Shown in pieces: positions 12,158-28,504 of a stretch of 64,000 nt of DNA. The notes beneath the pieces are model-generated. The model was not told the origin of the DNA. It saw only the letters and a list, made by a program, of their open reading frames with translations, and searched no databases. The stretch lies in the sequence record NC_047815.1. One strand, written 5' to 3'. A program made the translations under genes and the position numbers. Each line of letters starts with the position of its first letter. Position 1 is the first letter of the stretch.

Positions 12158-12931
12158 ATGAACGTAGATAAAACAATGCCACAAGGCAAATGGGAGTTTG
12201 ATGAACCCGTAGCCGCTGTGTTCGACAGCATGTTGCAAAACAGTATTCCTTCTTATGATCGTATGCGTGACCTGACATATCGTATCGGTCGCAAGTTCGT
12301 GCAGCCTGGAACAACCATCGTTGACTTAGGCGCATCGCTGGGTCGTGCCATTGAACCGTTTGCCGAAGAGTTCGGTGCGTATCTCGCGTCACCGCATCAC
12401 GTTAATGGCGAAGTCAGTGACATTATCGAAACAGGCAACTACTATGATCTGTACGAAGTCAGTGATCCGATGCGCAGCCGTCTCGTTCAAAACGAAGTGT
12501 TGCAATCCGTACGCGCTGAACTCCGTGATGAAAGCCTTGTAGATGTGCAAGACTTTGCTCGTAATAACGGTGCTGGTTGTAGCCTGATTCTCAGCGTGTT
12601 GACTCTCCAGTTCACTCCGCTTGAGCATCGCCAGCGCATCCTTGATCGTATCAGCAACAGTCTCAACGCTGGTGGTGCTTTCATTCTTGTTGAGAAAGTA
12701 TTGGGTGATTCGCACGCGCTTGATGACATGATGGTCGATGTGTACTACAGCATGAAAGGCGATAACGGTTATACCAAAGAAGCCATTGCCGCCAAGCGCA
12801 AGTCATTAGAAGGTGTATTGGTTCCGATGAAAGCAAGTTGGAACGAAGAACTGTTGCGTCAAGCAGGCTTCCGTCATGTTGATTGCTTCTATCGTGACTT
12901 GAACTTCGCTGGTTGGATTGCAGTTAAATAA
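12158..12931 (+). CDS. cmoA: carboxy-S-adenosyl-L-methionine synthase (CmoA-like)
   Basis: End-to-end match to the CmoA pattern: WEFDEPVAAVFDSMLQNSIPSY, VQPGTTIVDLGASLG, LTLQF, GGAFILVEK, KGDNGY...KRKSLEGVL, LRQAGF, LNFAGWIAVK. Confidence 0.85.
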   Translation: MNVDKTMPQGKWEFDEPVAAVFDSMLQNSIPSYDRMRDLTYRIGRKFVQPGTTIVDLGASLGRAIEPFAEEFGAYLASPHHVNGEVSDIIETGNYYDLYEVSDPMRSRLVQNEVLQSVRAELRDESLVDVQDFARNNGAGCSLILSVLTLQFTPLEHRQRILDRISNSLNAGGAFILVEKVLGDSHALDDMMVDVYYSMKGDNGYTKEAIAAKRKSLEGVLVPMKASWNEELLRQAGFRHVDCFYRDLNFAGWIAVK

Positions 12932-12940
12932 GGAGCGGTT

Positions 12941-13816
12941 ATGAGTACCACAGCCGCAATGCGCGAGAAGATTCGTGCTGGTGTAATCGAAAGTCACAAC
13001 AAGCCTGTTGATATGCGACAGGCTTTGATGGACACGCTTGCTTGGATTCCTAAAGACGACCAAGTGACTGTGTTTATGTCTGGTGGCATTGATAGTCATG
13101 CATGTTTATTTGCTGCTATTGATCTCGGACTGAAAGTTAACGTGCTTTCTTTTACGCTTGATACGCATGAATCAGCAGACTTTAAATCAGCACGTCACGC
13201 AGCAGAAGTGTTTGACCTCAAGTTTATCCCTATCGTGTTGCCTACCAACGAGCAACATTTAAAAAGCTGGGTTAAGTTTGCAGTCCACAAGTTGGGTCTA
13301 TCAAACAAAAGTGAAATCGAATGTAGCTGGCCGTTGTATTCAGCTATCCGTGCGCTTGAGCAGATGGGTGAGACCAAGCATATCGTGTTAGGTCTTGGTG
13401 GTGACAGCTACTTCCTCATGGCCAAGAGCGCATCAATGCACTGCAAAGACCTTGTGCTTGAGCAGCGACGCAAAGCTACTCGCCGTGTACTTAGTCAGAA
13501 CACACTGGTAAAGCGTGAGGCATTCGCACGAGGCATCTACGCACACCTGCCCTACTACGAGCTTGGTCGTGTGTATGCTGAATTGCAGATGGAAACAGAC
13601 TTCAAGAAGATCAACAGTCCTCAGAAGTCTTTCTACAATCAAGCATTTCCTGAATACCGCAAGCGTTGTAAAGTACGTGGTCATCAGAACTTCCAGCTGG
13701 GCGACACCAACATCAGCGGTATCTTTAGCGAAGTGTTGTTGAAGTCTGATTGGAACACAAGAAATTTAAAGGCCATTACAGGCATTTATAATGATGTAGC
13801 CGCTGGAATTATTTAA
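12941..13816 (+). CDS. asparagine-synthetase-like ATP-dependent amide ligase lacking the glutaminase domain
   Basis: PP-loop FMSGGIDS, LSFTL, D...ARHAAEVFDL, VLGLGGDSYF (cf. SGEGADELF), HLPY, NFQLG; only 291 aa. Confidence 0.75.
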   Translation: MSTTAAMREKIRAGVIESHNKPVDMRQALMDTLAWIPKDDQVTVFMSGGIDSHACLFAAIDLGLKVNVLSFTLDTHESADFKSARHAAEVFDLKFIPIVLPTNEQHLKSWVKFAVHKLGLSNKSEIECSWPLYSAIRALEQMGETKHIVLGLGGDSYFLMAKSASMHCKDLVLEQRRKATRRVLSQNTLVKREAFARGIYAHLPYYELGRVYAELQMETDFKKINSPQKSFYNQAFPEYRKRCKVRGHQNFQLGDTNISGIFSEVLLKSDWNTRNLKAITGIYNDVAAGII

Positions 13817-13834
13817 TTTCCGCCTACACGAAAA

Positions 13835-13842
13835 CTGTAAAT
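13835..13842 (+). promoter_or_regulatory. putative phage promoter CTGTAAAT upstream of the DPA-repeat peptide gene
   Basis: AAAACTGTAAATA, intergenic. Confidence 0.6.
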
Positions 13843-13912
13843 ACTAATTTGAGAAAGCATATTATTTGTAGACTCAAGTACATACCATCAATCCTATAAC
13901 AGGAGTTATACC

Positions 13913-14047
13913 ATGCGTAATCGTTTTGATCCAGCAGCTAAAGCAGACCCAGCAATCGTTGACCCAGCTGATCCAGCAATGTTTGATCCAGCAGACCCTG
14001 CTGATCCAGCGATGATCGACCCAGCTGATCCAGCAGCTCGCTTCTAA
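13913..14047 (+). CDS. 44-aa Asp-Pro-Ala repeat peptide (absent from the ORF track)
   Basis: MRNRFDPAAKADPAIVDPADPAMFDPADPADPAMIDPADPAARF; AGGAG RBS at 13901; synonymous codon variation between repeat units; own promoter-like motif and terminator. Confidence 0.85.
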   Translation: MRNRFDPAAKADPAIVDPADPAMFDPADPADPAMIDPADPAARF

Positions 14048-14059
14048 GCAAAAACCCAG

Positions 14060-14085
14060 AGGGTGGCCAATCGGCTGCCCTTTTT
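14060..14085 (+). terminator. intrinsic terminator
   Basis: AGGGTGGCC-AATC-GGCTGCCCT followed by TTTT. Confidence 0.75.
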
Positions 14086-14103
14086 CTTGTCAGAGGTTAT
14101 GTC

Positions 14104-14745
14104 ATGACTACACAACTCGTTAACAACATCCCACTAATCCATACCCAACGTTGCCACAATGTCAGCAGCGTAGACCACACACCGTTATTTGTCTATCACA
14201 ACTTCTTTTCTGACGACATGTGTGCCGCACTGATAGCAGAAGCACAGCAGTACCTCGAACCAAGCCGTGTAGGCGGTCCAAACAATACAACTAAAATCGA
14301 CCGTTCGGTACGCAGTTCCAGCACAGCTATGTTAAGCGAAGTGAGCACAGCGCCTTGTGTGCTTGAAGCAATCAAACTGATCGACCTTGCTTATGGTCAT
14401 CCTCATCTGAACAGCAACCCACTCCAGTTCAATCAATATCAAACCGGTGAAGAATTCAAAGCGCATCATGATTGGCATAATCCTGAAACGCAGCAAGCAC
14501 GTATTGAACTCGAAGGTCAACGTACCTGGACTTTCTTGATGTATCTCAACGAGGACTTCGATGGCGGCACGACAGTGTTCCCTCATCTGGACATTGAAAT
14601 CATGCCTCAACGTGGTATGCTTGTTGCGTGGAACAATCTGAATGCAGATGGTAGTGTTAACATCGCAACAGAACACGCATCCCAGCCGGTAGTACGTGGT
14701 ACAAAGTACATGATGACCAAGTGGTTTAAAAACAAAGTTTTATAA
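14104..14745 (+). CDS. 2OG-Fe(II) oxygenase, prolyl-4-hydroxylase-like
   Basis: RSSSTA, LQFNQYQTGEEFKAHHD (HxD), RTWTFLMYLNEDFDGGTTVFP, distal H in TEHASQPV, TKYMMTKW. Confidence 0.9.
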   Translation: MTTQLVNNIPLIHTQRCHNVSSVDHTPLFVYHNFFSDDMCAALIAEAQQYLEPSRVGGPNNTTKIDRSVRSSSTAMLSEVSTAPCVLEAIKLIDLAYGHPHLNSNPLQFNQYQTGEEFKAHHDWHNPETQQARIELEGQRTWTFLMYLNEDFDGGTTVFPHLDIEIMPQRGMLVAWNNLNADGSVNIATEHASQPVVRGTKYMMTKWFKNKVL

Positions 14746-14750
14746 TACAT

Positions 14751-14772
14751 GTGGGTGGCTTAGGCTGCCCAC
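14751..14772 (+). terminator. hairpin / probable terminator
   Basis: GTGGGTGGC-TTAG-GCTGCCCAC just after the oxygenase stop. Confidence 0.6.
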
Positions 14773-14794
14773 GGTTGTGTCTGTGTCAAGAAAA

Positions 14795-14802
14795 CTGTAA
14801 AT
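14795..14802 (+). promoter_or_regulatory. putative phage promoter CTGTAAAT
   Basis: AAAACTGTAAATA, intergenic after a hairpin. Confidence 0.6.
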
Positions 14803-14828
14803 AAATAGAAACACACTAGGACAATCTC

Positions 14829-15071
14829 ATGCTATTCTTAGCCTGCCTTTTCTACGCGCTGTTTGGCCTGCTGTTTGTAGCAGGTATGCTGGTAACTTTA
14901 GGTGGCTACTTTATTAAACATGGCTATCACAACTTACTCAAATATGAATTACCCGACGACTTTGAGGAAGTAATCACAAAGCGTTGGTCAGCAATGGTTA
15001 CTGTGCTTGGTGTTTTATGTTTGGTGTGCCACTTGCTGTACACCATCTTCTGGTACTTAGGCACTCATTAG
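14829..15071 (+). CDS. small two-TM membrane protein
   Basis: Two hydrophobic segments; AGGA RBS. Confidence 0.7.
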   Translation: MLFLACLFYALFGLLFVAGMLVTLGGYFIKHGYHNLLKYELPDDFEEVITKRWSAMVTVLGVLCLVCHLLYTIFWYLGTH

Positions 15072-15080
15072 AGGACACGC

Positions 15081-15344
15081 ATGATTAACAAGTTTAGATT
15101 AAAACAAATTCCGACCATTGAGGCTTGTCAGTGGAACGGAGAGAATCGTCAAGAGATTGAGGAATTCATCGGCACAAGCGGCCATGTTCAAGGCAGATAT
15201 GTTATGCTCGGCGCCTTAGATCGATACGGCAAACCTACTATCCAAAACATCAGCGTAGGCAACTATGTTGTTCGAACAGATAGTGGCAAGTTGTGTGGTA
15301 TGGTCAGCACTGAGCTTTTCGAACTGTATGTTCTGGAGGATTGA
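15081..15344 (+). CDS. conserved phage hypothetical protein
   Basis: IEACQWNGEN...GNYVVR...ELFE pattern, which I recall as common in phages. Confidence 0.7.
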   Translation: MINKFRLKQIPTIEACQWNGENRQEIEEFIGTSGHVQGRYVMLGALDRYGKPTIQNISVGNYVVRTDSGKLCGMVSTELFELYVLED

Positions 15345-15596
15345 ATGACAGAGAAAACCGTTACGACCAAATGGGTGCCCGTGATTGATATTAAAATCTC
15401 GGGGGATGAAGGTCCTGCTATGAACGCATTGTATGTTCAGATTCATCAGGCGCTTGAAGATGCTGGTGTGTTTGTCGAACACGCTAAGCCTGAACTGTGG
15501 GAAGAAATTCAGGCAACAGGCGAACAGCATCTTGCTTTGGGCGTTCTGGATGAAATCAGCCCGCACGTTATTCTCAGCCAATCGGTAACACGCTGA
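15345..15596 (+). CDS. hypothetical protein
   Basis: GGAGG RBS, operon context. Confidence 0.65.
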   Translation: MTEKTVTTKWVPVIDIKISGDEGPAMNALYVQIHQALEDAGVFVEHAKPELWEEIQATGEQHLALGVLDEISPHVILSQSVTR

Positions 15597-16018
15597 TGCC
15601 TACAGTTAAAGTTAGCAAAGACCAGTGCCCAGGATTTATTGATGGCAGCATTGCATATTGGGAACGCAGCGAAGACCCATTCCACAAGAAGGCTTATCCG
15701 AAACAGATTCGTCATCTTGCTCCTATACAGGAAGGTCGTCGTCGCGCGGGTTGGATGGCAATCGATGGTCATGAGAATCCAGTTGGCTTTGTTGCAGACG
15801 GTCAGGAAGTTGAAGCAGACAGCACGGAATGGATTACTTACATCGGTCCCTTCGATCGGCCTGTCTGTGTACCGCTTGCCCAACACAGTATCAAGACCAT
15901 TGAACAGCACTGCAAGATGCGCACAGAGCGTCAGCGCAAGAACCTCAAGACGGTTGAACGCACTACTGGTATCGTCGAACAGGCTAAAGCAGTAGTACGC
16001 CGTATAATCTGTAAATAG
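15596..16018 (+). CDS. hypothetical protein
   Basis: Start overlaps upstream stop codon. Confidence 0.65.
   Translation: MPTVKVSKDQCPGFIDGSIAYWERSEDPFHKKAYPKQIRHLAPIQEGRRRAGWMAIDGHENPVGFVADGQEVEADSTEWITYIGPFDRPVCVPLAQHSIKTIEQHCKMRTERQRKNLKTVERTTGIVEQAKAVVRRIICK
16009..16016 (+). promoter_or_regulatory. putative phage promoter CTGTAAAT
   Basis: Overlaps the upstream stop codon, about 30 nt before the next start. Confidence 0.55.
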
Positions 16019-16047
16019 CTAGTACATTCAACAACAAGGTAATTGAA

Positions 16048-16506
16048 ATGAGTCCGTTTTCAATACTACAACGTCAGGTTGTCCGAGCCTTAACCGGAGA
16101 AGCCAACCTTGAACCAGAAGAACGTGCGTTGTTTGACTGGCGATTCGTAGTAGACGTTGGTGGCAAGTTTTATACAGTCGGTAAAACTGGTGCAAACACT
16201 GTGTATTACATGACACCAGAAATGACTGAGCCAGTACCGTGCTATCCAGACCAGATAGCTGAAATCATTACAGGTTGGGCCAAGCCTAAATATATCAGTT
16301 ATATGATTTGCCACAAACGTTTCGATAACGTCAAGCTGGACAATATCAAAACTGAACAGGAAGCCTTGCGTAAGGTGCCTAAGACGTTTCATGACAAGAC
16401 GTTTATTGTTGGTATCACGTCGAAAGGCAAGCGCCACAAGCTGTATCGTCTGCAAGCTGGACTTAACGGTAATGCCTGGGTACCAGTCAGCGAAGAATCA
16501 GAATAG
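16048..16506 (+). CDS. hypothetical protein
   Basis: 152 aa, flanked by promoter-like motif and terminator. Confidence 0.7.
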   Translation: MSPFSILQRQVVRALTGEANLEPEERALFDWRFVVDVGGKFYTVGKTGANTVYYMTPEMTEPVPCYPDQIAEIITGWAKPKYISYMICHKRFDNVKLDNIKTEQEALRKVPKTFHDKTFIVGITSKGKRHKLYRLQAGLNGNAWVPVSEESE

Positions 16507-16512
16507 TGCTAT

Positions 16513-16535
16513 AGGGTGCCTCAGGGTGCCCTTTT
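16513..16535 (+). terminator. intrinsic terminator
   Basis: AGGGTGCC-TCAG-GGTGCCCT followed by TTT. Confidence 0.7.
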
Positions 16536-16553
16536 CTGATCTTGTGCAGAAAT

Positions 16554-16561
16554 CTGTAAAT
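16554..16561 (+). promoter_or_regulatory. putative phage promoter CTGTAAAT upstream of dam
   Basis: AAATCTGTAAATA, intergenic. Confidence 0.6.
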
Positions 16562-16589
16562 ATGATAAAAGCAACAAAAGAGAAAGCAG

Positions 16590-17429
16590 ATGCCTATTCT
16601 AGTTAGCCCCGTCCGCTATCAGGGCTCGAAGCGAAGTCTTATGTCTCAGATTAAAAGTTTGGCGCCAGCAGACTGCCCGCGCATGATTGATGCTTTTGGT
16701 GGTTCAGCAACGGTTGTGTGTAACATGAATCAGCCACATCGTATCTATTGCGAAAGCCACCAGCATGTATACAACATCATCAAGGTGTTGTGTGACGTTG
16801 AGCCTTCTCAGACAATGGCAAAGATTCGCCGGCTTGTACGACAATGGTGTTTGACCAACAGCAATCCCGATCAATACTTTGCCTTTCGTGCGCACGCCAA
16901 TCAGCGACGTGATCCGCTTATGTACTACATCTTGCATCGTCATGCACACAGCAACCTGATTCGCTTCAATCAAAGTGGTGAGTTCAATACACCGTTCGGC
17001 AATCGTGGTCTGATTGGCAGATGGGAAGAGCTTGAGCGTGAGATCTACCAGTTCTATTATGCGATGCAAGGCGTGCGCCTTGTGAACATGCGCTATGGTG
17101 ACTTGCTCAACAAAGTAAAGCCGAGCCTGAACCAGAACACGTTCATCTACTTTGACCCGCCCTATCTTGCATCAGGCGCTAACGCCTATGACGGTTGGTC
17201 AGTTGAGCTTGAACTCAAGTTACTGCGTAACCTCGAACACCTGACCAGTATGGGTGTACGCTGGATGTTGAGTAACGTTGTGCGTCACAGACACTTTGAA
17301 AACAAGTTGCTTGAGCAGTGGCTGCGCAAGAACAAGATTCGTGTTGTCTATCCTCAAAAGAGCTATGCGTTTGCTAATGCCCAACAGGACAGCCACAGCA
17401 CCATAGAAATCATCGCGATGAACTATTGA
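16590..17429 (+). CDS. dam: DNA adenine methyltransferase (D12/Dam class)
   Basis: SPVRYQGSKRSL, DAFGGSATV, RFNQSGEFNTPFG, FIYFDPPY, WMLSN; target sequence not determinable from sequence alone. Confidence 0.85.
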   Translation: MPILVSPVRYQGSKRSLMSQIKSLAPADCPRMIDAFGGSATVVCNMNQPHRIYCESHQHVYNIIKVLCDVEPSQTMAKIRRLVRQWCLTNSNPDQYFAFRAHANQRRDPLMYYILHRHAHSNLIRFNQSGEFNTPFGNRGLIGRWEELEREIYQFYYAMQGVRLVNMRYGDLLNKVKPSLNQNTFIYFDPPYLASGANAYDGWSVELELKLLRNLEHLTSMGVRWMLSNVVRHRHFENKLLEQWLRKNKIRVVYPQKSYAFANAQQDSHSTIEIIAMNY

Positions 17430-17436
17430 GGCGTGT

Positions 17437-17805
17437 ATGCTATACCGAGACGATAAGTATTCAGGCGAGTTAAAAGATCATCCTGTTGTGTTGTTGCTGT
17501 CCTTCAAGATAGGTGGTCCGTCACCGCACCGAGTAAGTGGTCGTGACCTTTATCGCTATATGGGTGTTTGCAAAAACTATAGCGGCTGGATAAACGACCG
17601 CATCAAAGTTCTCGGTCTGATTGAAAACACTGACTACAACATCGAATGGTTCAAGAGCGATCTCAATGGACACTCTATAGAACACATGCTAACGCAATTT
17701 GCAGCGATTGAGATAGTAATGAGCGGCAGAGGTGAGTTGTCGAGGTTGGTACGACGCAGTGCTGTCCGACGTGACGGTACGATACGTTTTAAAGAAAACG
17801 ACTAA
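17437..17805 (+). CDS. AntA/AntB antirepressor-like DNA-binding protein
   Basis: VSGRDLYRYMGVCKNYSGWINDRIKVLGLIENTDY...EHMLTQFAAIEI. Confidence 0.7.
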   Translation: MLYRDDKYSGELKDHPVVLLLSFKIGGPSPHRVSGRDLYRYMGVCKNYSGWINDRIKVLGLIENTDYNIEWFKSDLNGHSIEHMLTQFAAIEIVMSGRGELSRLVRRSAVRRDGTIRFKEND

Positions 17806-17817
17806 GGCGCAATATGA

Positions 17818-18165
17818 ATGCTGCCTGTAAGCAACTCGGAGAATCACAAAGTGTCAAATTCCAGAGAACTTAGATACCAGCTTGGTCATCTGCTGGAGAA
17901 GTTTGAACGCGACATTCATACAGAAATAAGGCGGCACGGTCCCAATCCTTATGGAGATTGGGGAAAGCTGGCAGATTTGACTGTAGAAAGCTATCGCAAA
18001 GTTACATTGAGTCGTGTACGTAGTTCGTACCGCATGCTGTGCAATATGTGCGGACTAGAACGCGGTTATTATGCGTTTCGCAAATTTCTATACACCAATC
18101 AAACTCTGAAACAAATTGATCAATTACTCAAGGAGCACTACAGTGGACAACACGATCCAACCTGA
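17818..18165 (+). CDS. hypothetical protein
   Basis: ORF in operon context. Confidence 0.6.
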   Translation: MLPVSNSENHKVSNSRELRYQLGHLLEKFERDIHTEIRRHGPNPYGDWGKLADLTVESYRKVTLSRVRSSYRMLCNMCGLERGYYAFRKFLYTNQTLKQIDQLLKEHYSGQHDPT

Positions 18166-18799
18166 AGACGAGATTAATGGTTTTCAAGTTACAGACAAAG
18201 CTAGCGATCTGTTTCGCTATGCCTTCTATTTAAAAACACTCAACTTCGAACTGCCTACTAGCTGGTGGCAGAGTCACATCGTAGCTAACGCTGATGAAGT
18301 GCTGGAGCGTGGTCTGTTAGTAGAAGGTCCAGTTGTTTTGGCGCACGATGTTAGCATATTCGATGGTTGGAAAACAGTGTGTCGCAACAGTCGTGATTAC
18401 TGTGATGCAGCATTTGCAGGCTTGCTTGATATGTATGATCGTTTCGAGCGCGTGTTGGAGCACACAAGCCGAATGACCAACGATTTTGAATACGAATTCA
18501 ATTTACCTCAAGACCAACAGTGGTTGAATCGTAATGCTGTGCTGTTCTTTGAGCGTGCTCGTTTATTGATTGTGGTGCGCAACAACACACTCGATTCGTG
18601 GCAGATTGGCGTTAGCCCTACTGTGCGTAGTTGGATCTATCGCAAACACAACATGCTGCCTAAAAAGAGTTTCGCAGAGTGGCAGAACTTGTATGCATCA
18701 CAGAGAACGTTAGGTGGTTTAGACAAACAGCAGATCGCCGCCTGCGCTACACAGTATCTGGCTGTTAACTTTCCTGATAAGTTTGGAGGCGGTTTGTGA
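18143..18799 (+). CDS. hypothetical protein
   Basis: GTG start after AAGGAG; in frame with track ORF 18116. Confidence 0.65.
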   Translation: MDNTIQPEDEINGFQVTDKASDLFRYAFYLKTLNFELPTSWWQSHIVANADEVLERGLLVEGPVVLAHDVSIFDGWKTVCRNSRDYCDAAFAGLLDMYDRFERVLEHTSRMTNDFEYEFNLPQDQQWLNRNAVLFFERARLLIVVRNNTLDSWQIGVSPTVRSWIYRKHNMLPKKSFAEWQNLYASQRTLGGLDKQQIAACATQYLAVNFPDKFGGGL

Positions 18800-19536: not shown

Positions 19537-19908
19537 ATGCGTAAGATTATTGCTCTGTTTTTCGTTTTGTTTTTGACTTCATGCAACGATGCTGATGTGG
19601 CCAGTGACAATCTCTCTAAAGCCGCAGATAACTTTGAACTGAATCGCCGAATCGTTTTCTATAACGGCATTACTAGTGATTACATTTTCACTATTGAAGG
19701 TCTTTGTTCTAAGGACAACAGCAGCACTGAGAAAAAGCTGGCTATTACGTGCAAGACTGGTCCAAATACCTTCAAGAAACACTTCTTAGGTCTGAGTGAC
19801 AACGTGACCTATTTTATCGAACAGCTTGAGCCTGCAACCACTAGCGTGTATCACTATCGCGTTGTGTTCAAGCCATCCGTAATCATTCCTGATATTGAGA
19901 TCAAGTGA
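19537..19908 (+). CDS. putative lipoprotein, conserved phage family
   Basis: Signal peptide with lipobox LTS-C; ADNFELNRRIVFYNGIT. Confidence 0.75.
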   Translation: MRKIIALFFVLFLTSCNDADVASDNLSKAADNFELNRRIVFYNGITSDYIFTIEGLCSKDNSSTEKKLAITCKTGPNTFKKHFLGLSDNVTYFIEQLEPATTSVYHYRVVFKPSVIIPDIEIK

Positions 19909-20390
19909 TGACTGAGACCAAAGCTATCGCAATCATGGCAAGTCTGTTTGGACTTGCTACTATCAGTCACAGCCGTCGTCGTAGCTGTGCAGCAGCCGTT
20001 GTCAGACTGGTTGAAGGCGTACCAGTAATGATTGCTACTGGTGTTAACGGCACAGCGCCTGGCACGGAAAATGCGTGTGAGCCAGAAGATCTAAGCAGCA
20101 CCTTCTCACATGTTATTCATGCAGAAGATAACTGTTTGCGTCGTTATGCCTCTACGTGTACCTCTCAAGATGGCGACATGCTGTTTGTTACTGACAGTCC
20201 GTGTCCAGCCTGCTTTCAGCTTGTACTTAATACGGGCATTCGTCGCGTATACTATGCGCGTGGCTATCGCATTCAAGACCACTTGCCTCTTGCTGACGAA
20301 CACGGACTTGAATTTGTACAGGTCGATTTGCAGCAGGTGCGTATGGCTCTTGTTGAAGCCCACCAGCGTATTGACCGCGTAATCTGCTAA
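19905..20390 (+). CDS. dCMP deaminase (ComEB-like)
   Basis: HAEDN and SPCPAC zinc-deaminase motifs, TGVNG, GIRRVYY. Confidence 0.85.
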   Translation: MMTETKAIAIMASLFGLATISHSRRRSCAAAVVRLVEGVPVMIATGVNGTAPGTENACEPEDLSSTFSHVIHAEDNCLRRYASTCTSQDGDMLFVTDSPCPACFQLVLNTGIRRVYYARGYRIQDHLPLADEHGLEFVQVDLQQVRMALVEAHQRIDRVIC

Positions 20391-21360: not shown

Positions 21361-21373
21361 TCAGGATTATGCA

Positions 21374-21907
21374 ATGCAAATTGGTTATCGCTGCAAAAAC
21401 TGTAAGTACGTCCACAACAGCATTGTGTCTAGCTGTGACTGTGAATCAAGTCATACATTCGAGTACACCAAAGTCGCTATTCATGATCTGCCACAAACAA
21501 CTCCAGAAGTGCCTGACATTACTACTCTTGACTATACGCAGGATGACTGGCATGTTAACATTCCTGGCGGTCAGTACGGTAACGGTGTGTATGCGTATAC
21601 AGGCCCGTGGCAAGAACACAATGCAAGGTTTGGGCATGAGACTGTTGCGCATGTAATGGGAACAGGTCAACACCTCGATCGTCACCATCGTGCAGATCGT
21701 AAAAACGAACGCGCTAATCTGGTGTTGGTCAGTGGTGCTAACCGACTGCTTGAAGCGTGCTATATGGCTCTTGCCTACTTTGAACTAAAGCAAAAAGTGC
21801 AAGGCAGCAGCCCACGTAACTCTGCACGTATTGCTGTTTTGAAAGATGCTATCGTCAAAGCAACAGACCAAAGTCCTCTCGACGTCCGCCACACTGAGAA
21901 GAAATAA
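21374..21907 (+). CDS. hypothetical protein with N-terminal Cys cluster
   Basis: CKNC...CDC. Confidence 0.65.
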   Translation: MQIGYRCKNCKYVHNSIVSSCDCESSHTFEYTKVAIHDLPQTTPEVPDITTLDYTQDDWHVNIPGGQYGNGVYAYTGPWQEHNARFGHETVAHVMGTGQHLDRHHRADRKNERANLVLVSGANRLLEACYMALAYFELKQKVQGSSPRNSARIAVLKDAIVKATDQSPLDVRHTEKK

Positions 21908-21922
21908 AGGAAGCACGAGAAA

Positions 21923-22243
21923 ATGTACAATGCCCTAAAGTATGTGATGTTTATCAGAACTGAAAAGCACCGTGATGGTACTGTTGTCCGTCAGCACTTG
22001 CCTGTTATCTTTGCTGCTTGTGTTATGCACAGCGACATGGCAGAGCGTATGCGCGAACAAGGCTGGAACGAAGGACGTCATGATCGCACTGACGTTGAAA
22101 TCGAACCCGTTAGTGCTGGCTTTATGTATATTCCGAAAATGGAATGTTTTGGTGAATCTGAATCTCTTGGACTCAAGAGCCGCAAAGAAGATACGTTGAT
22201 CATCCAGCAGTGGCCAGACAATAAGGGGATGATCGCAGAATGA
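21923..22243 (+). CDS. hypothetical protein
   Basis: AAGGA RBS. Confidence 0.65.
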   Translation: MYNALKYVMFIRTEKHRDGTVVRQHLPVIFAACVMHSDMAERMREQGWNEGRHDRTDVEIEPVSAGFMYIPKMECFGESESLGLKSRKEDTLIIQQWPDNKGMIAE

Positions 22244-22581
22244 CTTTGAGCATGTTTCTATACAATTTTGTAGGTATCATTGTCGCCGTTGCCGTGTTTC
22301 TCTTGCATTTGCATTTTACTGAACGCCGACCACGTGCCTTGTACTTGCGCAAGCAACAAGCTGCGTTGAGAGCGGTACAGAACGGTCTGTTACACAGAGG
22401 TCAGATCTACGAACATCATAGCGGGCGCAAGTACATTCTGTTGTTGGTAACAAACGATACCTGTGACGACCTTGTCAAGTGGCCTGTCACCGTTTCTTAC
22501 TGCGATATGGCCAGAGAAAACTATTACAGCAGACCTCTACATGAGTTTATGATCAACATGAAACTCTGCAAAGAACTGTAA
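22240..22581 (+). CDS. TM-anchored DUF1653-like protein
   Basis: N-terminal TM segment; GQIYEHHSGRKY...VSYCD...YYSRPLHEF. Confidence 0.6.
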   Translation: MTLSMFLYNFVGIIVAVAVFLLHLHFTERRPRALYLRKQQAALRAVQNGLLHRGQIYEHHSGRKYILLLVTNDTCDDLVKWPVTVSYCDMARENYYSRPLHEFMINMKLCKEL

Positions 22582-22583
22582 AT
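22576..22583 (+). promoter_or_regulatory. putative phage promoter CTGTAAAT upstream of thyA
   Basis: Overlaps the upstream stop codon; followed by (ACATA)x3 and AGGAG. Confidence 0.55.
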
Positions 22584-22620
22584 CTATAAAACATAACATA
22601 ACATAACAGGAGAGCGCCGC

Positions 22621-23721
22621 GTGAGTGCCAACTTTGATATTCGTAATCCCCAACACCGTGAAATGTATCTGATGGAAAGCGTTGATGGTCAGTACATGGG
22701 GCTGGTTAAAGCTATTCGTGAAACAGGTACTGTTGAAGGTGACTCACAGCGCAGTGAAGATACTTGGCGCTCCTTGATTGGTTGTGTGACTCAGTTACGC
22801 AACACCACACTAGCGTTTCCTGCTTTGCTGTCTAAGCAAGTTGCTTGGCTGCCTGCTGTTCGTGAGACCTGTTGGTTCATGCGCGGTGAGACTAACATCA
22901 AGACTCTCGACAGCAAGATCTGGGACGAGTGGGCAGACGTTGAGGGTGAGTGTGGTCCTATCTACGGTGAAATGTGGCGTCACTGGCCAGACAACAAGAT
23001 CTTCTATTCAAGCAACACGATGGACGAACTTCAGGTCAGCGAAGCATATCGCCAGCGCATCGATCGTGAAAAGCAGCGTATGCTTGCAGCAGGTGCGCAT
23101 GTTACTGAACTGCCAGATGGGCGTGAACTGTTTGAATTGGAGATTGACCAACTGCTTGATGCTCTGCTTGCTATTTGCAGTCATAGTCGCAGTCGTCGCA
23201 TTCTTGTTAATGCATTTAACCCTGGCTACATTCATATGCAGGGTCTGCCTCCTTGTCATGTTATGTTTGACTTCAACGTGACCAAGGCCACACGTTATGA
23301 TGAGCTTGCGGCAGCAGCGGCAGGTCGTGAAGTCTATGGCGATACACTGCACCTGACAGCAACCATGCGCAGCCAAGACGTCCTCCTCGGTCGTCCTTTC
23401 AACATCATCGGCTACACCACGCTGCTGCACCTGTTTGCCAAGTATGCTCGTCTCAATATTGGTACCATGACACTCAACACCAGCAACACCCATGTGTACG
23501 AACACCACTGGGACGCGCTGAAACAACAACAGCGTCAATACGAAGAACTGATTGCTGAAATGGAACAATCCGGTCAGCCTATGCAATATCCTACGTTGCG
23601 TATCAGCGATGACATATTCAAGTTCAGCCCTAAAGAACTGCTGGACAACATTACCGCAGACTATTTTCAGCTTGAAGGCTATCAGCCTAAAGCACCTGTT
23701 CGTGGGAGGGTGACAGTATAA
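22621..23721 (+). CDS. thyA: thymidylate synthase
   Basis: GPIYGEMWR, SRRILV, LPPCH catalytic Cys, RSQDVLLGRPFN (dUMP-specifying Asn), THVY. Confidence 0.9.
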   Translation: MSANFDIRNPQHREMYLMESVDGQYMGLVKAIRETGTVEGDSQRSEDTWRSLIGCVTQLRNTTLAFPALLSKQVAWLPAVRETCWFMRGETNIKTLDSKIWDEWADVEGECGPIYGEMWRHWPDNKIFYSSNTMDELQVSEAYRQRIDREKQRMLAAGAHVTELPDGRELFELEIDQLLDALLAICSHSRSRRILVNAFNPGYIHMQGLPPCHVMFDFNVTKATRYDELAAAAAGREVYGDTLHLTATMRSQDVLLGRPFNIIGYTTLLHLFAKYARLNIGTMTLNTSNTHVYEHHWDALKQQQRQYEELIAEMEQSGQPMQYPTLRISDDIFKFSPKELLDNITADYFQLEGYQPKAPVRGRVTV

Positions 23722-24359
23722 TGTTTCATCTTATCAAGCTACTGCCAAACAACTGTTTCGAAGTGCTGGCTGAACCTGATCAAGCACTGCCGGATGTTGG
23801 CGTATCAGTGTGCATTCATCTGATCTCGCGCTTCCGACTGCACAACTGCACGGTGCTTGCTCATATTGGTCACAACAAAGTCATTGTGCAACAAACACAA
23901 GATGAACCTACTGTTTGGCACGCAGACCAGATTTATCATGTAGGTGAAGAAGGTGATGTGTGGTCAGATCTCACTGAGGCTGGTCTCAAGTATATAACCA
24001 CCAGCCGTGATCACAAGATTCAGCAACTGTGTCAGGCTATGGTAGAGGAACTTGTTCGCGCAGAACAGAAACATCCCAAGTGGACAAGTGATGCCGTACA
24101 CGCTGCTGGTATCTTAGCAGAAGAAAGTGGTGAAGCGATGCAGGCGGCTGTTGACTTCAACGCAACTGGCGACAAGCAGCATATCCCGCTGTTGATTACG
24201 GAAACTATTCAGACTGGTGCTATGTGCTTGCGCCTGTTGCTCAACGCTGATAAGTTCCGCAAGCCTATTGACGCGCAAGCCGTGCTCAACATCCTCGAAA
24301 GCAATGAAATTGACGAGGCAGACAAGCTGTTTGAAATTGCTGCTTTGATTAAGGAATAA
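23721..24359 (+). CDS. two-domain protein with C-terminal MazG-like pyrophosphohydrolase
   Basis: ILAEESGEAMQAA...ETIQTGAM. Confidence 0.55.
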   Translation: MFHLIKLLPNNCFEVLAEPDQALPDVGVSVCIHLISRFRLHNCTVLAHIGHNKVIVQQTQDEPTVWHADQIYHVGEEGDVWSDLTEAGLKYITTSRDHKIQQLCQAMVEELVRAEQKHPKWTSDAVHAAGILAEESGEAMQAAVDFNATGDKQHIPLLITETIQTGAMCLRLLLNADKFRKPIDAQAVLNILESNEIDEADKLFEIAALIKE

Positions 24360-24360
24360 C

Positions 24361-25275
24361 ATGGAACTTAGTCAGTTAACAACGATGCATCTTAACGTGC
24401 GTGAAGTTTTAGCGCACGGTCCTTACGGTATGAAGAATGATCCAGACCCTTCGTACTATGTTATCCTTCGTGCAGATGAACCAGTAACAGTAGGTCAGTT
24501 TGCCAACATCGTCGTCAACGAGCATTTAACACTGTGGGATGTTGAAGTAACGGATAACGGCGATGACGTTGAGCCAGGTAACTTCTGGCAGTTGGTGTTT
24601 AAGGCAAGCAGACAAGATGACATGGAGCATGGTCTCAGTTTTCCAGACGTGTTTCGTGCATATGAATTGCGTCAAGCAGCACCAGACATGTTGCCCGTGC
24701 GTAAGCTGATGGAAGAAATTGTCGTTGCGGTGCAAGCTGCTTATGGCGCTGTTGATGGTAACGTGAGTGTAGATCTCGTAGGCGACATGTTGCACGTTAC
24801 AGGCAACGATCTCGATGAGCAAGTTCCTCTACATCCATTCTATGTTAGTCGTGCGCTGATGGGTCCTACAAGTTTTAGTCGCACTCAGACAGGCGAGTTG
24901 CATGTTCATCTTGAATATCCAGACGTTGACCCTCTTGTTAACTGGACAACGAATCACAACAGCGAGCTACAGGCACGCGCCCGCGACTATCTTGACGTCG
25001 TGTGTCTGGCTCTTGTGTGCAAGCCTGTAGATGAGCACGGTCGTCCGCAATACTGGTACATCACTGTGTTAAAGAACGGTAGCATGAGCGAGCAGTCCGT
25101 TCCATACACGCACATCATGCGCTTTGCCAAGCTGGGGCAATATCCAAAGGTCACGTTCGAGCGTGAGCGTGGTGGCTATCGTCTTGAAGTCAACAACGAT
25201 GAACTTCTTCCCCAAGAGGTGTTAGCCCTCGAGAAGTTTGATGGTCGTGCGCTTGCTCTAACATTCGGCTTGTAA
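24361..25275 (+). CDS. hypothetical protein
   Basis: AAGGA RBS, 304 aa. Confidence 0.7.
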   Translation: MELSQLTTMHLNVREVLAHGPYGMKNDPDPSYYVILRADEPVTVGQFANIVVNEHLTLWDVEVTDNGDDVEPGNFWQLVFKASRQDDMEHGLSFPDVFRAYELRQAAPDMLPVRKLMEEIVVAVQAAYGAVDGNVSVDLVGDMLHVTGNDLDEQVPLHPFYVSRALMGPTSFSRTQTGELHVHLEYPDVDPLVNWTTNHNSELQARARDYLDVVCLALVCKPVDEHGRPQYWYITVLKNGSMSEQSVPYTHIMRFAKLGQYPKVTFERERGGYRLEVNNDELLPQEVLALEKFDGRALALTFGL

Positions 25276-25322
25276 TCTTTCTCGCTAATTTCTGCACATG
25301 GTAATTTCGAGAGGACTAACAA

Positions 25323-25658
25323 ATGCAGCCAGGTCAAACGTTTTCATTCTACCCGTTCAAGATGTTTTCAGCACCACAGCGTGACCCTATCTATACAGGT
25401 CGCACTAACTTTACTACTCATGTGCGTGAACTTCCCGTCATGATAGGTCAGACGGATGTTGATTTTGAATTCAGTCATACCGAACGTCAGCAGATGGATC
25501 AGCCTAGCCTGTTCTTTACAGCACACGACGCAGCGGGACCTATCGAGATTGAACGAGTAGCTGTGCTGGGCTTAAAGATAACCGTATTATTTAAGCGACA
25601 GGTACAGGGCTTTGCCAAGCTAAGAGGCGAATGGCAGGTAATCACTCACTACTATTAA
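25323..25658 (+). CDS. hypothetical protein
   Basis: GAGGA RBS. Confidence 0.65.
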   Translation: MQPGQTFSFYPFKMFSAPQRDPIYTGRTNFTTHVRELPVMIGQTDVDFEFSHTERQQMDQPSLFFTAHDAAGPIEIERVAVLGLKITVLFKRQVQGFAKLRGEWQVITHYY

Positions 25659-25660
25659 AT

Positions 25661-25668
25661 CTGTAAAT
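25661..25668 (+). promoter_or_regulatory. putative phage promoter CTGTAAAT upstream of the ParB/methyltransferase pair
   Basis: AAATCTGTAAATA, intergenic. Confidence 0.6.
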
Positions 25669-25705
25669 ATGGGTTAGACAAGCTAGCCCATTCAAGAGAG
25701 TATCT

Positions 25706-26386
25706 ATGTCAACCACCAAAGTGAAAGTTAAAAAGAAAACTGGTAAAGGTGCTATTTCGCTCAAAGATCTAAAAGACGTAAAGCAACTTAAAGGTGCATC
25801 GTATAACCCACGCATCATTACCGATCGTCGTCTCAAAGACCTCGAAAAGTCTTTAGGTGCATTCGGTGACCTGTCAGGTGTTGTGTTCAACAACAACGTA
25901 AACAGTGGCGTGATGATTTCAGGCCACCAGCGTATCAGCAGTATCAAAGGTTGGAAGACACGTATTGAAGTGCAGCAGACCTCAGATGATCATGGCACTG
26001 TTGGTCTTGGCTTTATTCATGCTACCAGCCCTAAGGGCAAAAAGATTAGCATCCCACTGCGTGTTGTAGATTGGTCAGACAAGAAAGCAGAGTTTGCTGC
26101 TAACATTGCCGCCAACGCACACGGCGGTGAGTTTGATAACAAGAAACTTGCCAAGCTGGTTGAAAAGCTGGACATGAGCAAGATGCCAAGCGCCCTGATT
26201 GGTCTTGACCCGCTTCATATTCGCGGTCTGCAACAAAAGCTGATCAAAGATGGTGTGCCGCCAGAAAAAGCTGGTCGTACTACTGGTACCATGAACGGTG
26301 CAAGCGGTCAGTTCAACGAAGCAACAGTTGAAGACGTTGGTTCGGGTATGCAGCACAAGTGCCCACGTTGTAACTTCTCCTGGTAA
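25706..26386 (+). CDS. ParB/Srx-like N-terminal domain protein with C-terminal Cys motif
   Basis: LKGASYNPR, SLGAFG, MISGHQR, AANAHGGEFD; terminal HKCPRCNFSW. Confidence 0.75.
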   Translation: MSTTKVKVKKKTGKGAISLKDLKDVKQLKGASYNPRIITDRRLKDLEKSLGAFGDLSGVVFNNNVNSGVMISGHQRISSIKGWKTRIEVQQTSDDHGTVGLGFIHATSPKGKKISIPLRVVDWSDKKAEFAANIAANAHGGEFDNKKLAKLVEKLDMSKMPSALIGLDPLHIRGLQQKLIKDGVPPEKAGRTTGTMNGASGQFNEATVEDVGSGMQHKCPRCNFSW

Positions 26387-26395
26387 GGAACGTAC

Positions 26396-28504
26396 ATGCT
26401 TATCAAGCCACCTACTATGGCAGAGATTAACGCCCTGAAAAAGACTTGGACGGGCATGAGTTTCTTTGCTGGTTGTGGTGGTTCAAGCACGGGTCATAAA
26501 ATGAGCGGTATCGACATTCTTGTATCAAACGAGTTTGTCGATATTGCCCGCGACACCTATGCACTGAATCATCCAACAACAAAAGTGCTTGGTCAGGACA
26601 TTCGACGTCTTGACCCGAAAAAGATTCTGAATTTTAAAGGACTGAGTGTCGGCGAACTTGATTTGCTTGACGGCAGTCCTCCTTGCTTTCTCAAAGATAC
26701 CTTGATTCATACAGCAACCGGTATGCGCTACATCGACGCTATTCAAGCTGGTGATCTTGTGATGACGCATGAAGGTCGTTATCGTCGTGTTGTAGAACCA
26801 ATGCAGCGTCCGTATACTGGACCTATGCATCGCATTCAGACAACTATCGGTGAGAACGTAGCAACACCTGAGCACCCGTTCTATGTGCGTCGCATGAATG
26901 GCGGTGTGCTTGGTGCACCTGAATGGATTGATGCTCGTGATGTTCGTGCCGGTGATCGTGTTGCTACACCAACAGCAAGCCATGCGTCAGCCGCTAGCAA
27001 TGAGTCTAATCCTGTACTTGCTGCTTGGATGGAGATTCCTGAGTTCTGGTGGCTGTGTGGTCATTGGGTATCGAACGGTACTATCGAACAGGTCGGTCGC
27101 TATCGTGGTATCAAGTTCACAACACCGCGTGGGGGCCGCGCTAACCAACTGCTTGAGCAGGCTGTTGATACCTTAGGGTTCAGCACTATTCAAACAGCTC
27201 ATCAGACTGGTCAGTACATTGAACGTTTCATGATGGACGACACCTTGTTATCGTTCCTTGAGCGTTTCCTCACTGACACTGAATATGCACGTCAGATCCC
27301 AGGCACGGTGTTCCATCTTGACTCGTTCCTAAAGCGTGAGTTTATTTACGGCTTCCAGTCACGTTGTGCGTCTACCTCTTATGGTAAGACGCTGGTGGTG
27401 CAGACGCGTACCGCTCGATTCATGACTGGCATGAAATATCTGATTGCCTCCGCGTTTGGTTGCCCGCTGTTCGATCTCAGCCCGAACGTGACAACGGAAG
27501 AGATTCCACCTCATAGCTTTACGTTCCGTCCTGACTCAGACTTTGCGCAGCATGTTCGCTACACCACAGTGTTCTATCTTGATGATGCCGATCGTGGTTT
27601 CATTCGTGATGATACTGGTCACTTGTGGGTTGATGTTCTTGCCAACAACACGTCCGAAGTTGATACCGCAGTGTATAACTTTAGCGTAGCAGAGGACGAG
27701 ACCTACGTTGCCAACAACACTGTGGTGCACAACTGCAAAGGCTTCTCAACGTCTGGTGTGCAGCAAGATGGCTGGGGCAAAGAGGTCAAGTACAGCGAGA
27801 ACATCTATCAGCAGGTCGATGACTTGTTTGATGAGTTCTGCCGTATGCTGGGCGGTATCATGCCCAAGACCTTCACAGCAGAAAACGTTAGCGGTCTTGT
27901 TAAAGGTGCGTCGAAAGGTTACTTCCTTGAGATCATGAAAACGTTTGACGAGCTGGGCTATTATGTACGTGCACCGATACTCAACAGCAGTTGGTTAGGT
28001 GTTCCGCAGTCGCGTGAGCGTATCATCTTTATGGGTGTACGCAAAGACATAGCGAAAAAGCTCAAGCTACCTCAGAACTCTCAAGCTGTGCCAAGTGTTG
28101 TTCCGCAAGCAACACAAACAATGTTGGCTGATGCCCTGCCTCACATAGCAGGCTACAAGTCAACGCAGAAAGAGATCATCAAGTACAAGCCAGCAACAAA
28201 CGGTCCGATGCCAACAATCACAGCGGCAGATGCCATTGCTTATGAGACAGCACGATTCTCATCGGCAGGGTTTATCGAACTGCTTGACGGTACGAGGCGC
28301 AAGCTGACCATTGATGAACTGATTGTTGTTTCAGGCATGCCGAGTGATTACAAACTGCTTGGTACGTTTGAGCAACAGTGGGAACGTCTGGGGCGTGTAT
28401 GCGTTCCAGCAATGACCCACAACGCGTCGAAGGCATTGATCGAGAACATCTTGATTCCGTATGCCCGTGCGCGTAAGAAACAGCCGGGAGAGATCTTCCG
28501 CTAG
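26396..28504 (+). CDS. C5-cytosine DNA methyltransferase family protein with intein; probable carboxymethyltransferase (motif X GR)
   Basis: Motif I FFAGCGG, motif IV GSPP|C (split by intein), VI AENVSG, VIII GVPQSRERI, IX RRKLTIDE, X WERLGRVCVP. Confidence 0.9.
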   Translation: MLIKPPTMAEINALKKTWTGMSFFAGCGGSSTGHKMSGIDILVSNEFVDIARDTYALNHPTTKVLGQDIRRLDPKKILNFKGLSVGELDLLDGSPPCFLKDTLIHTATGMRYIDAIQAGDLVMTHEGRYRRVVEPMQRPYTGPMHRIQTTIGENVATPEHPFYVRRMNGGVLGAPEWIDARDVRAGDRVATPTASHASAASNESNPVLAAWMEIPEFWWLCGHWVSNGTIEQVGRYRGIKFTTPRGGRANQLLEQAVDTLGFSTIQTAHQTGQYIERFMMDDTLLSFLERFLTDTEYARQIPGTVFHLDSFLKREFIYGFQSRCASTSYGKTLVVQTRTARFMTGMKYLIASAFGCPLFDLSPNVTTEEIPPHSFTFRPDSDFAQHVRYTTVFYLDDADRGFIRDDTGHLWVDVLANNTSEVDTAVYNFSVAEDETYVANNTVVHNCKGFSTSGVQQDGWGKEVKYSENIYQQVDDLFDEFCRMLGGIMPKTFTAENVSGLVKGASKGYFLEIMKTFDELGYYVRAPILNSSWLGVPQSRERIIFMGVRKDIAKKLKLPQNSQAVPSVVPQATQTMLADALPHIAGYKSTQKEIIKYKPATNGPMPTITAADAIAYETARFSSAGFIELLDGTRRKLTIDELIVVSGMPSDYKLLGTFEQQWERLGRVCVPAMTHNASKALIENILIPYARARKKQPGEIFR
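26684..27733 (+). mobile_element. intein (350 aa) with degenerate LAGLIDADG domain
   Basis: Starts CFLKDTLI, block B ATPEHPF, ends VYNFSVAEDETYVANNTVVHN followed by Cys (+1); blocks C/E-like LCGHWVSNG and FIYGFQSRC lack the catalytic acids. Confidence 0.92.

Follow-up and report, generated by a model that had tools for sequence, protein, structure and literature searches.

The DNA window analysed here comprises nucleotides 1-64000 of the genome of Erwinia phage vB_EamM_Yoloswag (KY448244/NC_047815; 100% identity, window and genome coordinates being the same), a 259.7-kb jumbo myovirus with Erwinia amylovora as host. It contains two loci related to the CmoA/CmoX/CmoY system of cytosine hypermodification (Table 1): at 12-14 kb, genes for a CmoA-like carboxy-S-adenosylmethionine (Cx-SAM) synthase (gp16) and a CmoY-like ligase (gp17), and, 13.5 kb downstream, genes for a ParB-like protein (gp42) and an intein-bearing cytosine-C5 methyltransferase (MTase) of the CmoX kind (gp43). 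The ligase gene is followed by a small open reading frame (ORF) for a proline-repeat peptide (gp18) and by a 2-oxoglutarate (2OG)-Fe(II) oxygenase gene (gp19); gp17, gp18 and gp19 are together referred to as the trio. In GenBank, gp16 is named 'tRNA methyltransferase', gp17 and gp18 'hypothetical protein', gp19 '2OG-Fe(II) oxygenase', gp42 'ParB-like partition protein' and gp43 'putative modification methylase NgoFVII'. The CmoA-like gene, the asparagine-synthetase-like ligase and the C5-MTase had been proposed in an initial annotation of this DNA, and all three ORFs lie on the plus strand where they had been placed, with agreeing domain matches. In a literature search, DNA modification in Yoloswag was discussed in no paper found.

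Table 1. Features of the Yoloswag window and of two related records (positions are those of the window unless a record is named)
Feature	Position	Strand	Support or remarks
CTGTAAAT promoter-like motif, ~70 nt upstream of cmoA	12085..12092	+	
gp16, CmoA-like putative carboxy-SAM synthase, 257 aa	12158..12931	+	TIGR00740 E 2e-39; PDB 4GEK 5e-30; SpCmoA 2e-28
gp17, putative ATP-dependent amide ligase, CmoY-like 'type A', 291 aa, AsnB synthetase domain only	12941..13816	+	PP-loop SGGIDS
CTGTAAAT motif before gp18	13835..13842	+	
gp18, 44-aa acidic peptide MRNRFDPAAKADPAIVDPADPAMFDPADPADPAMIDPADPAARF, (Asp-Pro-Ala)n	13913..14047	+	own ribosome-binding site (RBS) AGGAG
Terminator-like hairpin and T-run right after gp18	14058..14083	+	11-pair stem
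gp19, prolyl-4-hydroxylase-like 2OG-Fe(II) oxygenase, 213 aa	14104..14745	+	PF13640 (2OG-FeII_Oxy_3) E 1.4e-15
gp24, 152 aa, travels with cmo modules	16048..16506	+	PHROG 23597 (unknown function)
CTGTAAAT motif upstream of ParB-like gene	25661..25668	+	
gp42, ParB/Srx-like putative DNA-binding protein, C-terminal CxxC	25706..26386	+	PHROG 620 'ParB-like partition protein' E 1.2e-32
gp43 ORF, C5-MTase with Hint/intein domains	26396-28504	+	702 aa; PF00145 E 7e-36
CmoX N-extein, aa 1-96, motifs I to IV up to SPP	26396..26683	+	53% identity to SpCmoX residues 19-98
Class-1 intein, 350 aa, degenerate LAGLIDADG insert	26684..27733	+	Cys1, TPEH block B, terminal HN, +1 Cys; Hint_2 E 4e-8
CmoX C-extein, begins with catalytic Cys (CKGFS)	27734..28504	+	has ENV, QxRxR, motif X
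CGT codon, Arg667 (Arg317 once spliced), SpCmoX R350 equivalent	28394..28396	+	ERLGR vs ERVGR of 8YF3
DUF1611 protein, Dickeya phage AD1 gp017	L022 1516-2571		E 8e-46
DUF1611 protein, contig L018	L018 4899-5975		E 7e-49

The reference system is that of Synechococcus phage S-B43 (Yang et al., Nat Commun 2025; PMC12783734, December 2025), in which CmoA produces Cx-SAM, SpCmoX forms 5-carboxymethylcytosine (5cxmC) at GC sites, and SpCmoY joins free glycine to 5cxmC to give the glycine amide 5-glycyl-carboxymethylcytosine (5gcxmC). Wild-type SpCmoX takes Cx-SAM only, and its Arg350, which replaces Asn304 of HhaI, contacts the cofactor carboxylate (PDB 8YF3). The initial annotation had referred to a cyanophage set of this kind with an amino-acid amide as product, and the published set bears this out. 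A survey in the same paper counted 5,615 CmoX, 4,257 CmoA, 2,251 ligase and 1,660 ParBc sequences; the association of ParB with CmoX is already reported there, and 'alternative amine substrates' are left open. The words 'oxygenase' and 'intein' have 0 occurrences in that paper, which also does not mention a proline-repeat micro-ORF with a prolyl-4-hydroxylase (P4H)-like partner.

The coding sequence of gp43 is interrupted exactly at the catalytic cysteine by an intein (aa 97-446) that begins with a Cys right after the S-P-P of motif IV and ends in His-Asn, the next residue, Cys447, being the MTase nucleophile. C97, the TPEH block, HN446 and C447 identify it as a class-1 intein, and its TIGR01443 score is 17.9 bits (cut-off 15.6). 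Upon removal of the intein in silico, S94-P95-P96 joins C447 and the C5-MTase motifs become complete (ENV at 496-498 and Q538-x-R540-E-R542), and the resulting 352-aa protein has SpCmoX (8YF3) as its top PDB match (E 5e-57, 197 bits), with ordinary methyltransferases at 58 bits or below (HaeIII, the next PDB match, at 58 bits). The motif-X string WERLGRVCVP was confirmed, including the arginine codon to which the initial annotation had drawn attention: R667, encoded by CGT, aligns to SpCmoX R350 at the HhaI N304 position, replacing the motif-X Asn by Arg. SPP, the Cys, ENV, QxRxR and GR (G666-R667) were invariant in an alignment of eight CmoX homologues including SpCmoX. Use of Cx-SAM by gp43, and with it the formation of 5cxmC, is predicted from these residues.

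All 48 Erwinia, 2 Dickeya and 1 Yersinia phage records have the intein at the identical site. Its identity has fallen to 36-39% in most of them, against 74-78% for the C-extein, and it is therefore taken to be old and vertically inherited; it is absent from the CmoX of PaBG, contigs L009 and L018, and S-B43. Its homing endonuclease is probably dead, because the acidic residues of both LAGLIDADG positions have been lost (CGHWVSNGT and FIYGFQSRCAS, versus the canonical VGRFVGDG and FIQGYISADGS of the intein in contig L010). A 27%-identical intein is carried by a methylase of Pseudomonas phage Lana. The initial annotation had called the transferase intein-gated; the unspliced precursor would have a split, non-contiguous motif IV, and any 'gating' beyond that is speculation.

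The same annotation had stressed the split loci, the intein and the ParB partner. These are not peculiar to Yoloswag but are shared by about 50 records of Erwinia, Dickeya and Yersinia jumbo phages, and a gp42-type gene lies directly upstream of CmoX in all relatives. gp42 itself has no Pfam hit, and a gp42 profile found nothing in the PDB, the name being due to PHROG alone. Elsewhere the cmo genes are contiguous, in the order ParB, CmoX, CmoA, gp24-like, ligase in PaBG, and in differing orders in four unrelated viral contigs: ParB, CmoX, ligase, peptide, oxygenase, CmoA, gp24-like in L008, L009 and L110, and ParB, CmoX with intein, chorismate mutase, CmoA, ligase, peptide, oxygenase, gp24-like in L010. 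The two Yoloswag loci therefore represent one module parted by intervening genes. In L008, the cmoX gene is frameshifted, and a gene for a 261-aa zinc-finger protein (5060-5845, minus strand; DUF4379 treble-clef match, possibly a free-standing homing endonuclease) lies between the intein-less cmoX and the ligase.

The TIGR00740 match of gp16 extends over residues 10-257, and the protein is 28% identical to the active SpCmoA; 4GEK, its PDB match, is an E. coli CmoA structure. In an alignment with E. coli CmoA, gp16 keeps Y39, D62, G64, S66, F137, E164 and R199, of which Arg199 forms a salt bridge to the carboxymethyl carboxylate and the other six contact SAM (PMC3663124). Synthesis of Cx-SAM from SAM and prephenate by gp16 would be consistent with this conservation. 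As the initial annotation had stated, no cmoB partner accompanies the gene: tblastn with E. coli CmoB gave no match in Yoloswag or in the other phage genomes of the collection, the sole hit being to a 3.4-kb record. Between cmoX and cmoA, the 242-kb viral contig L010 carries a gene for an 88-aa chorismate mutase (4934-5200; CM_2 E 1.5e-7, above the gathering score), which would fit a phage-encoded source of prephenate for CmoA; no chorismate mutase was found in the 64-kb Yoloswag window.

The ligase gene begins 10 nt past the end of cmoA. Its product aligns to SpCmoY over 261 columns (residues 36-288) with 26-28% identity (E 2e-19) and has weak matches to Asn_synthase/QueC. The best PDB folds for its AlphaFold2 (AF2) model (predicted local distance difference test, pLDDT, 81) were beta-lactam synthetase 1MC1 (E 5e-8) and AsnB 1CT9 (TMq 0.68), the matches covering the C-terminal synthetase domains only; there is no glutaminase domain. 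Among phages with CmoA 67-70% identical, the ligases fall into distinct types: type A (mutual identity at least 56%) in Yoloswag, Y3, pEp_SNUABM_52 and metagenomic relatives; type B, about 35% identical to type A, in SNUABM_2/5/30/35/36/39, phB78, Yersinia fHe-Yen9-02 and PaBG; type C, 27-30% identical to type A, in Dickeya AD1 and many SNUABM phages; and a separate ligase in contig L018, 45-51% identical to type A. Over types A and B and the ligases of L018 and L017, 39 columns are invariant, including the C-terminal HQNFQLGD; gp17 may be an amide-forming ligase that acts on 5cxmC, of a subfamily other than that of SpCmoY. The type C and the L018 ligase, which are of unrelated lineages, are each paired with a DUF1611 protein inserted between cmoA and the ligase, which on gene order represents a second kind of accessory cassette at the cmoA-adjacent ligase slot. 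This slot presents itself as a cassette that can be swapped while the CmoA/CmoX backbone is shared, and at least three or four types of ligase occupy it, a pattern that is new; since the accessory genes differ with the ligase type, different amide substituents on a shared 5cxmC handle are implied. A protein of about 205 aa encoded after type B and type C ligases was considered as a hidden oxygenase or cassette member and ruled out, as it is a backbone gene that also follows the oxygenase in Y3 and has no Pfam hit.

Type A ligases are distinguished by their neighbours. The oxygenase gene is adjacent in 16/16 type-A loci, from about five lineages in which ligase identity ranges from 56% to 91% and the surrounding genes are rearranged, and in every type-A locus with real intergenic DNA a proline-repeat ORF of 34-54 aa, equivalent to gp18, lies between ligase and oxygenase. 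All type B, type C and S-B43 loci examined lacked the trio, having neither a gp19-type oxygenase nor, where it was sought beside these ligases and in S-B43, a proline-repeat ORF. The suggestion in the initial annotation that a nearby 2OG oxygenase might alter the end product thus gains real support from this strict co-inheritance.

The oxygenase is a full-length P4H type with Bacillus anthracis P4H (3ITQ; E 2.7e-20) as its top PDB match; the iron triad (H121-x-D123, H191) and the 2OG-binding K201 align to 3ITQ and are invariant in the orthologues. Among phage genomes, homologues above 60% identity were found only in Yoloswag, Y3, pEp_SNUABM_52 and Salmonella phage Sen-NF, which are exactly the records with a type A ligase. 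In IMG/VR and a large protein collection, each orthologue examined (loci L008, L009, L010, L104, L105/106, L107/108, L109, L110 and L116) lay just downstream of a type A ligase. A metagenome scan with the oxygenase profile, which served as a negative control, yielded no new modules and gave only homologues of at most 38% identity without cmo neighbours; of 79 P4H homologues at this greater distance, not one lay near a cmo gene.

The peptide gene gp18 was not mentioned in the initial annotation. Its equivalents include MRHIDPAVRFNDPAITDPAARFDPADPADPAIGFDPADPADPADPAARF in Y3, MFKFDPADPAMFDPADPADPAMFDPADPADPADPA in L110 and, as the most divergent, MKNYEPEMTSKFDEPEEPEMTSKFDEPEEPEVVA in L010. All of the peptides are rich in carboxylates, as (DPA)n or, in L010, (EPE)n, and every proline of the (DPA)n peptides precedes an alanine; as regards leader and core, no more than a short basic N-terminus and repeated x-Phe boundaries was apparent, and the module has no protease gene. 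A GATC repeat at the DNA level, rather than a gene, was ruled out by a conserved RBS, start, stop and terminator together with free synonymous variation in the DPA units (Asp: GAC 33, GAT 31; Pro: CCA 36, CCG 14, CCT 13; Ala: GCA 28, GCT 27, GCC 5, GCG 4). Every peptide gene is preceded by a Shine-Dalgarno sequence, and those of the jumbo phages also by a CTGTAAAT motif of their own; a GC hairpin with T-run stands within about 25 nt after all nine peptide genes compared. Because the oxygenase gene sits past this terminator without a motif of its own, the arrangement suggests plentiful peptide and scarce enzyme. A search for gp18 relatives among 5.8 billion proteins, with a short and low-complexity query, gave nothing significant. 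A short peptide gene beside modifying enzymes, conserved at the amino-acid level (nine distinct peptides), would fit a precursor/enzyme cassette like those of ribosomally synthesised and post-translationally modified peptides (RiPPs).

A viral precedent for such a pair exists in PBCV-1, whose P4H hydroxylates virus-encoded Pro-Ala-Pro-Lys repeats and prefers a proline preceding an alanine (PMC3634087). It is unlikely that a proline-repeat peptide came to stand beside a prolyl hydroxylase by chance, and gp19 more probably than not, on our estimate, hydroxylates prolines of gp18.

The homology of the three genes and the motif-X arginine together make the Yoloswag system a member of the published CmoA/CmoX/CmoY pathway (PMC12783734). 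We consider it likely that the phage encodes cytosine hypermodification of this type with gp17 tied to gp18 and gp19 and a final product unlike 5gcxmC; taken by itself, the presence of a 5cxmC-derived base in Yoloswag DNA is judged highly probable. gp16 would convert SAM and host prephenate to Cx-SAM; after splicing had rejoined motif IV (SPP|C), gp43 would use this cofactor, its carboxylate held by Arg667, to form 5cxmC in phage DNA, probably assisted on the DNA by the ParB-like gp42. gp17 would then adenylate a carboxylate and an amide would be formed in a reaction that draws on gp18, whole or in part, instead of free glycine, and it is therefore expected that the end product differs from 5gcxmC. 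Hydroxylation of gp18 prolines is the most likely role for gp19. Attachment of the peptide or a fragment to DNA is considered rather unlikely, and so is the scheme in its most explicit form, with gp18 or fragments of it cut at x-Phe boundaries as amine donor and a peptidyl-carboxymethylcytosine, a covalent conjugate containing hydroxyproline, in the DNA. The core pathway and the ParB partner are already published; what is new is the co-inherited set of ligase subtype, micro-peptide and prolyl-hydroxylase homologue.

Several points weigh against this interpretation. The observations on the Yoloswag proteins concern homology, key residues and gene linkage, from which their activities are deduced; in the literature search, no paper on Yoloswag, Y3, AD1 or PaBG was found that reports base analysis or resistance to restriction. 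The TIGR00740 score of gp16 (135.6 bits) falls short of the 193.3 that NCBIfam sets as equivalog cut-off. In gp16, E stands in place of D89 and N132 is not conserved, yet the active SpCmoA has the same changes. An acidic peptide of about 40 aa on many cytosines would be hard to package. Finally, the trio also occurs in Sen-NF-like phages (ligase 78-79%, oxygenase 59-63% identity), where it is flanked by a RecA-like gene and by DNA polymerase genes (L105, L106, L109, L116). BLAST and profile hidden Markov models (E <= 1), run on about 30 kb of an 88-kb contig, on the other contigs and on the Sen-NF record of 108 kb, detected no gene of the CmoA, CmoX, ParB-like or gp24-like kind. It may therefore be that the trio has no need of 5cxmC and modifies the peptide rather than DNA. 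The Sen-NF record (PV359490.1; L005, L111-L113) consists of abutting coding sequences (CDSs) without intergenic DNA, with most ORFs below about 155 aa missing, and looks like CDSs strung together, not like the sequence of a genome; it was rejected as an independent complete genome and was used cautiously, backed by real contigs. As these contigs are partial and the record is concatenated, the absence of CmoA and CmoX is not proven. These loci still show the trio travelling as one unit, which may be able to function in the absence of 5cxmC. Of the sequence of carboxymethylation and amidation that the initial annotation had put forward, carboxymethylation is supported by the homology of the three genes to the characterised S-B43 set, and amidation is less certain, as the trio is found also where no CmoA or CmoX was detected. 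An Acb1-family (anti-CBASS) protein is encoded a few kb upstream of the trio in Sen-NF-like contigs (L114 7809-8243, L116 2966-3397).

These Sen-NF-like loci also speak for a different account, in which the cmo part ends at 5cxmC and the trio is a separate RiPP-like cassette: gp17 would adenylate Asp/Glu side chains or the C-terminus of the peptide, leading to amidation or cyclisation, gp19 would hydroxylate its prolines, and the peptide would act alone, perhaps mimicking DNA or countering host defence. Lasso-peptide cyclases, which adenylate the side chains of Asp/Glu in peptides, are among the AsnB-type enzymes; all of the peptides here are carboxylate-rich, gp17 weakly matches an NCBIfam macrolactam cyclase family (E 0.003), and the layout, with promoter and peptide gene followed by a leaky terminator and then the enzyme, is reminiscent of a precursor-enzyme operon. 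On the other side, gp17 is homologous over most of its length to the DNA-acting SpCmoY and sits in the CmoY slot by cmoA, four independent gene orders place the trio between cmoX and cmoA or next to them, motifs beyond the ATP site are common to ligase types without a peptide partner, and the missing CmoX of the Sen-NF-like phages leans on partial contigs and a record of concatenated CDSs. On balance we regard the separate cassette as rather unlikely.

Even less weight is given to gp17 being a plain CmoY orthologue that adds a free small amine (glycine or another amino acid), with gp18 and gp19 carried along in a horizontally moving block and gp19 acting on a phage or host protein unrelated to DNA modification. 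Free glycine is indeed the substrate of SpCmoY, and P4H-like oxygenases are very common in phages without cmo context (79/79 distant homologues); but ligase subtype, micro-ORF and oxygenase co-occur perfectly across lineages with ligase identities from 56% to 91%, the gp19 orthologue group is found nowhere else, and the pairing of proline repeats with a prolyl hydroxylase would be left to coincidence, which makes this account improbable. That gp43 is an ordinary 5-methylcytosine MTase and gp16 a tRNA-modification or SAM-depleting enzyme, with no carboxymethylation of DNA at all, would agree with the GenBank labels ('modification methylase NgoFVII', 'tRNA methyltransferase') and with the sub-threshold score of gp16 in the CmoA equivalog family. 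It is very hard to reconcile with the presence, at the motif-X Asn position, of the Arg to which the carboxylate of Cx-SAM is bound in 8YF3, in an enzyme lineage whose member SpCmoX accepts only Cx-SAM, with the lack of a cmoB to spend Cx-SAM on tRNA, and with the adjacency of CmoA, CmoX and ligase in relatives. Hypermodification by way of 5cxmC, with gp17 linked to gp18 and gp19, is accordingly the interpretation that we prefer.

Two further elements accompany the cmo genes. Homologues of gp24 abut cmo modules of several ligase types (L008 8647-9106, L009 8212-8670, L010 7772-8212, L018 6888-7328, L110 2849-3292 and PaBG gp307); the AF2 model of gp24 (pLDDT 84) has no PDB neighbour, and BFVD gives the PaBG homologue only. 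The CTGTAAAT motif, (A/T)-rich plus CTGTAAATA, occurs at 12 sites, all on the plus strand (7733, 10379, 12085, 13835, 14795, 16009, 16554, 22576, 25661, 30575, 33708 and 35013), against 2.5 expected, and 12 sites were reached in 0/100 shuffles. The sites stand in A-rich context shortly before gene starts, preceding cmoA, gp18, gp20, gp24, dam, a ThyA-like gene, parB and others, and the motif probably serves this phage group as an early or middle promoter; variants of the form AAAACTGTAAA are present in L010 and in Sen-NF-like contigs, and in the Sen-NF-like phages they precede the peptide gene. The initial annotation had noted the motif at each locus, where it is indeed present (12085 and 25661), but ten other sites make it a general promoter-like element, found before 12 or more genes or gene groups, and a tie between the two cmo loci was ruled out by its position before many unrelated genes from 7.7 to 35 kb. 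The same region encodes a thymidylate-synthase homologue (gp38, 22621-23721) of 366 aa, about 100 aa longer than usual, with the catalytic Cys (PPCH) and the dUMP-type Asn (PFNI) kept, as well as a dCMP deaminase (gp32, 19905-20390) and a Dam methylase (gp25, 16590-17429).

Proof that 5cxmC occurs naturally came only in late 2025 and from a single cyanophage, glycine being the sole extension known; a culturable enterobacterial jumbo phage and about 50 relatives can now be placed in the 5cxmC system, which offers a natural CmoX variant whose intein sits precisely at the catalytic cysteine. Should the trio contribute to the DNA product, DNA hypermodification would for the first time be seen to employ a ribosomal peptide together with a protein hydroxylase, and peptidyl-carboxymethylcytosine, if it exists, would represent an as yet undescribed class of DNA hypermodification. 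If the trio is not linked to DNA, it would constitute a new phage RiPP-like system that has repeatedly settled by DNA-modification genes.

Among known systems, the cassettes of sister phages (type B in PaBG and SNUABM_5, type C in AD1, and that of L018) share with Yoloswag the position by cmoA and the backbone of CmoA, CmoX, ParB and gp24, and unlike Yoloswag have other accessory genes, without micro-ORF and oxygenase. PBCV-1 likewise combines a virus-encoded P4H-family enzyme with virus-encoded proline repeats in which Pro stands before Ala, but it is a eukaryotic virus with basic repeats in larger proteins, whereas the Yoloswag peptide is free and acidic and is linked to an AsnB-type ligase and DNA-modification genes. 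With the AsnB superfamily (asparagine synthetase B, beta-lactam synthetase, lasso-peptide cyclases), in which a carboxylate is adenylated and an amine captured, gp17 shares the PP-loop ATP pyrophosphatase fold; unlike AsnB it has no glutaminase domain, and its presumed substrate is a DNA-borne carboxymethyl group or a peptide. The engineered M.MpeI N374K, which uses Cx-SAM (PMC12783734), also has a basic residue in place of the motif-X Asn, but gp43 is natural, carries Arg rather than Lys, belongs to another MTase lineage and is served by a dedicated phage CmoA. With S-B43 the agreement covers all three proteins, which are homologous, the SPPC motif and the Arg350 equivalent, a ligase reduced to the synthetase domain without glutaminase, the absence of cmoB and a ParB-domain neighbour. 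In contrast to the contiguous genes of S-B43, those of Yoloswag lie 13.5 kb apart in a phage of an enterobacterium, its CmoX has an intein at the catalytic Cys, and its ligase subfamily is tied to a proline-repeat micro-ORF and a P4H-like oxygenase.

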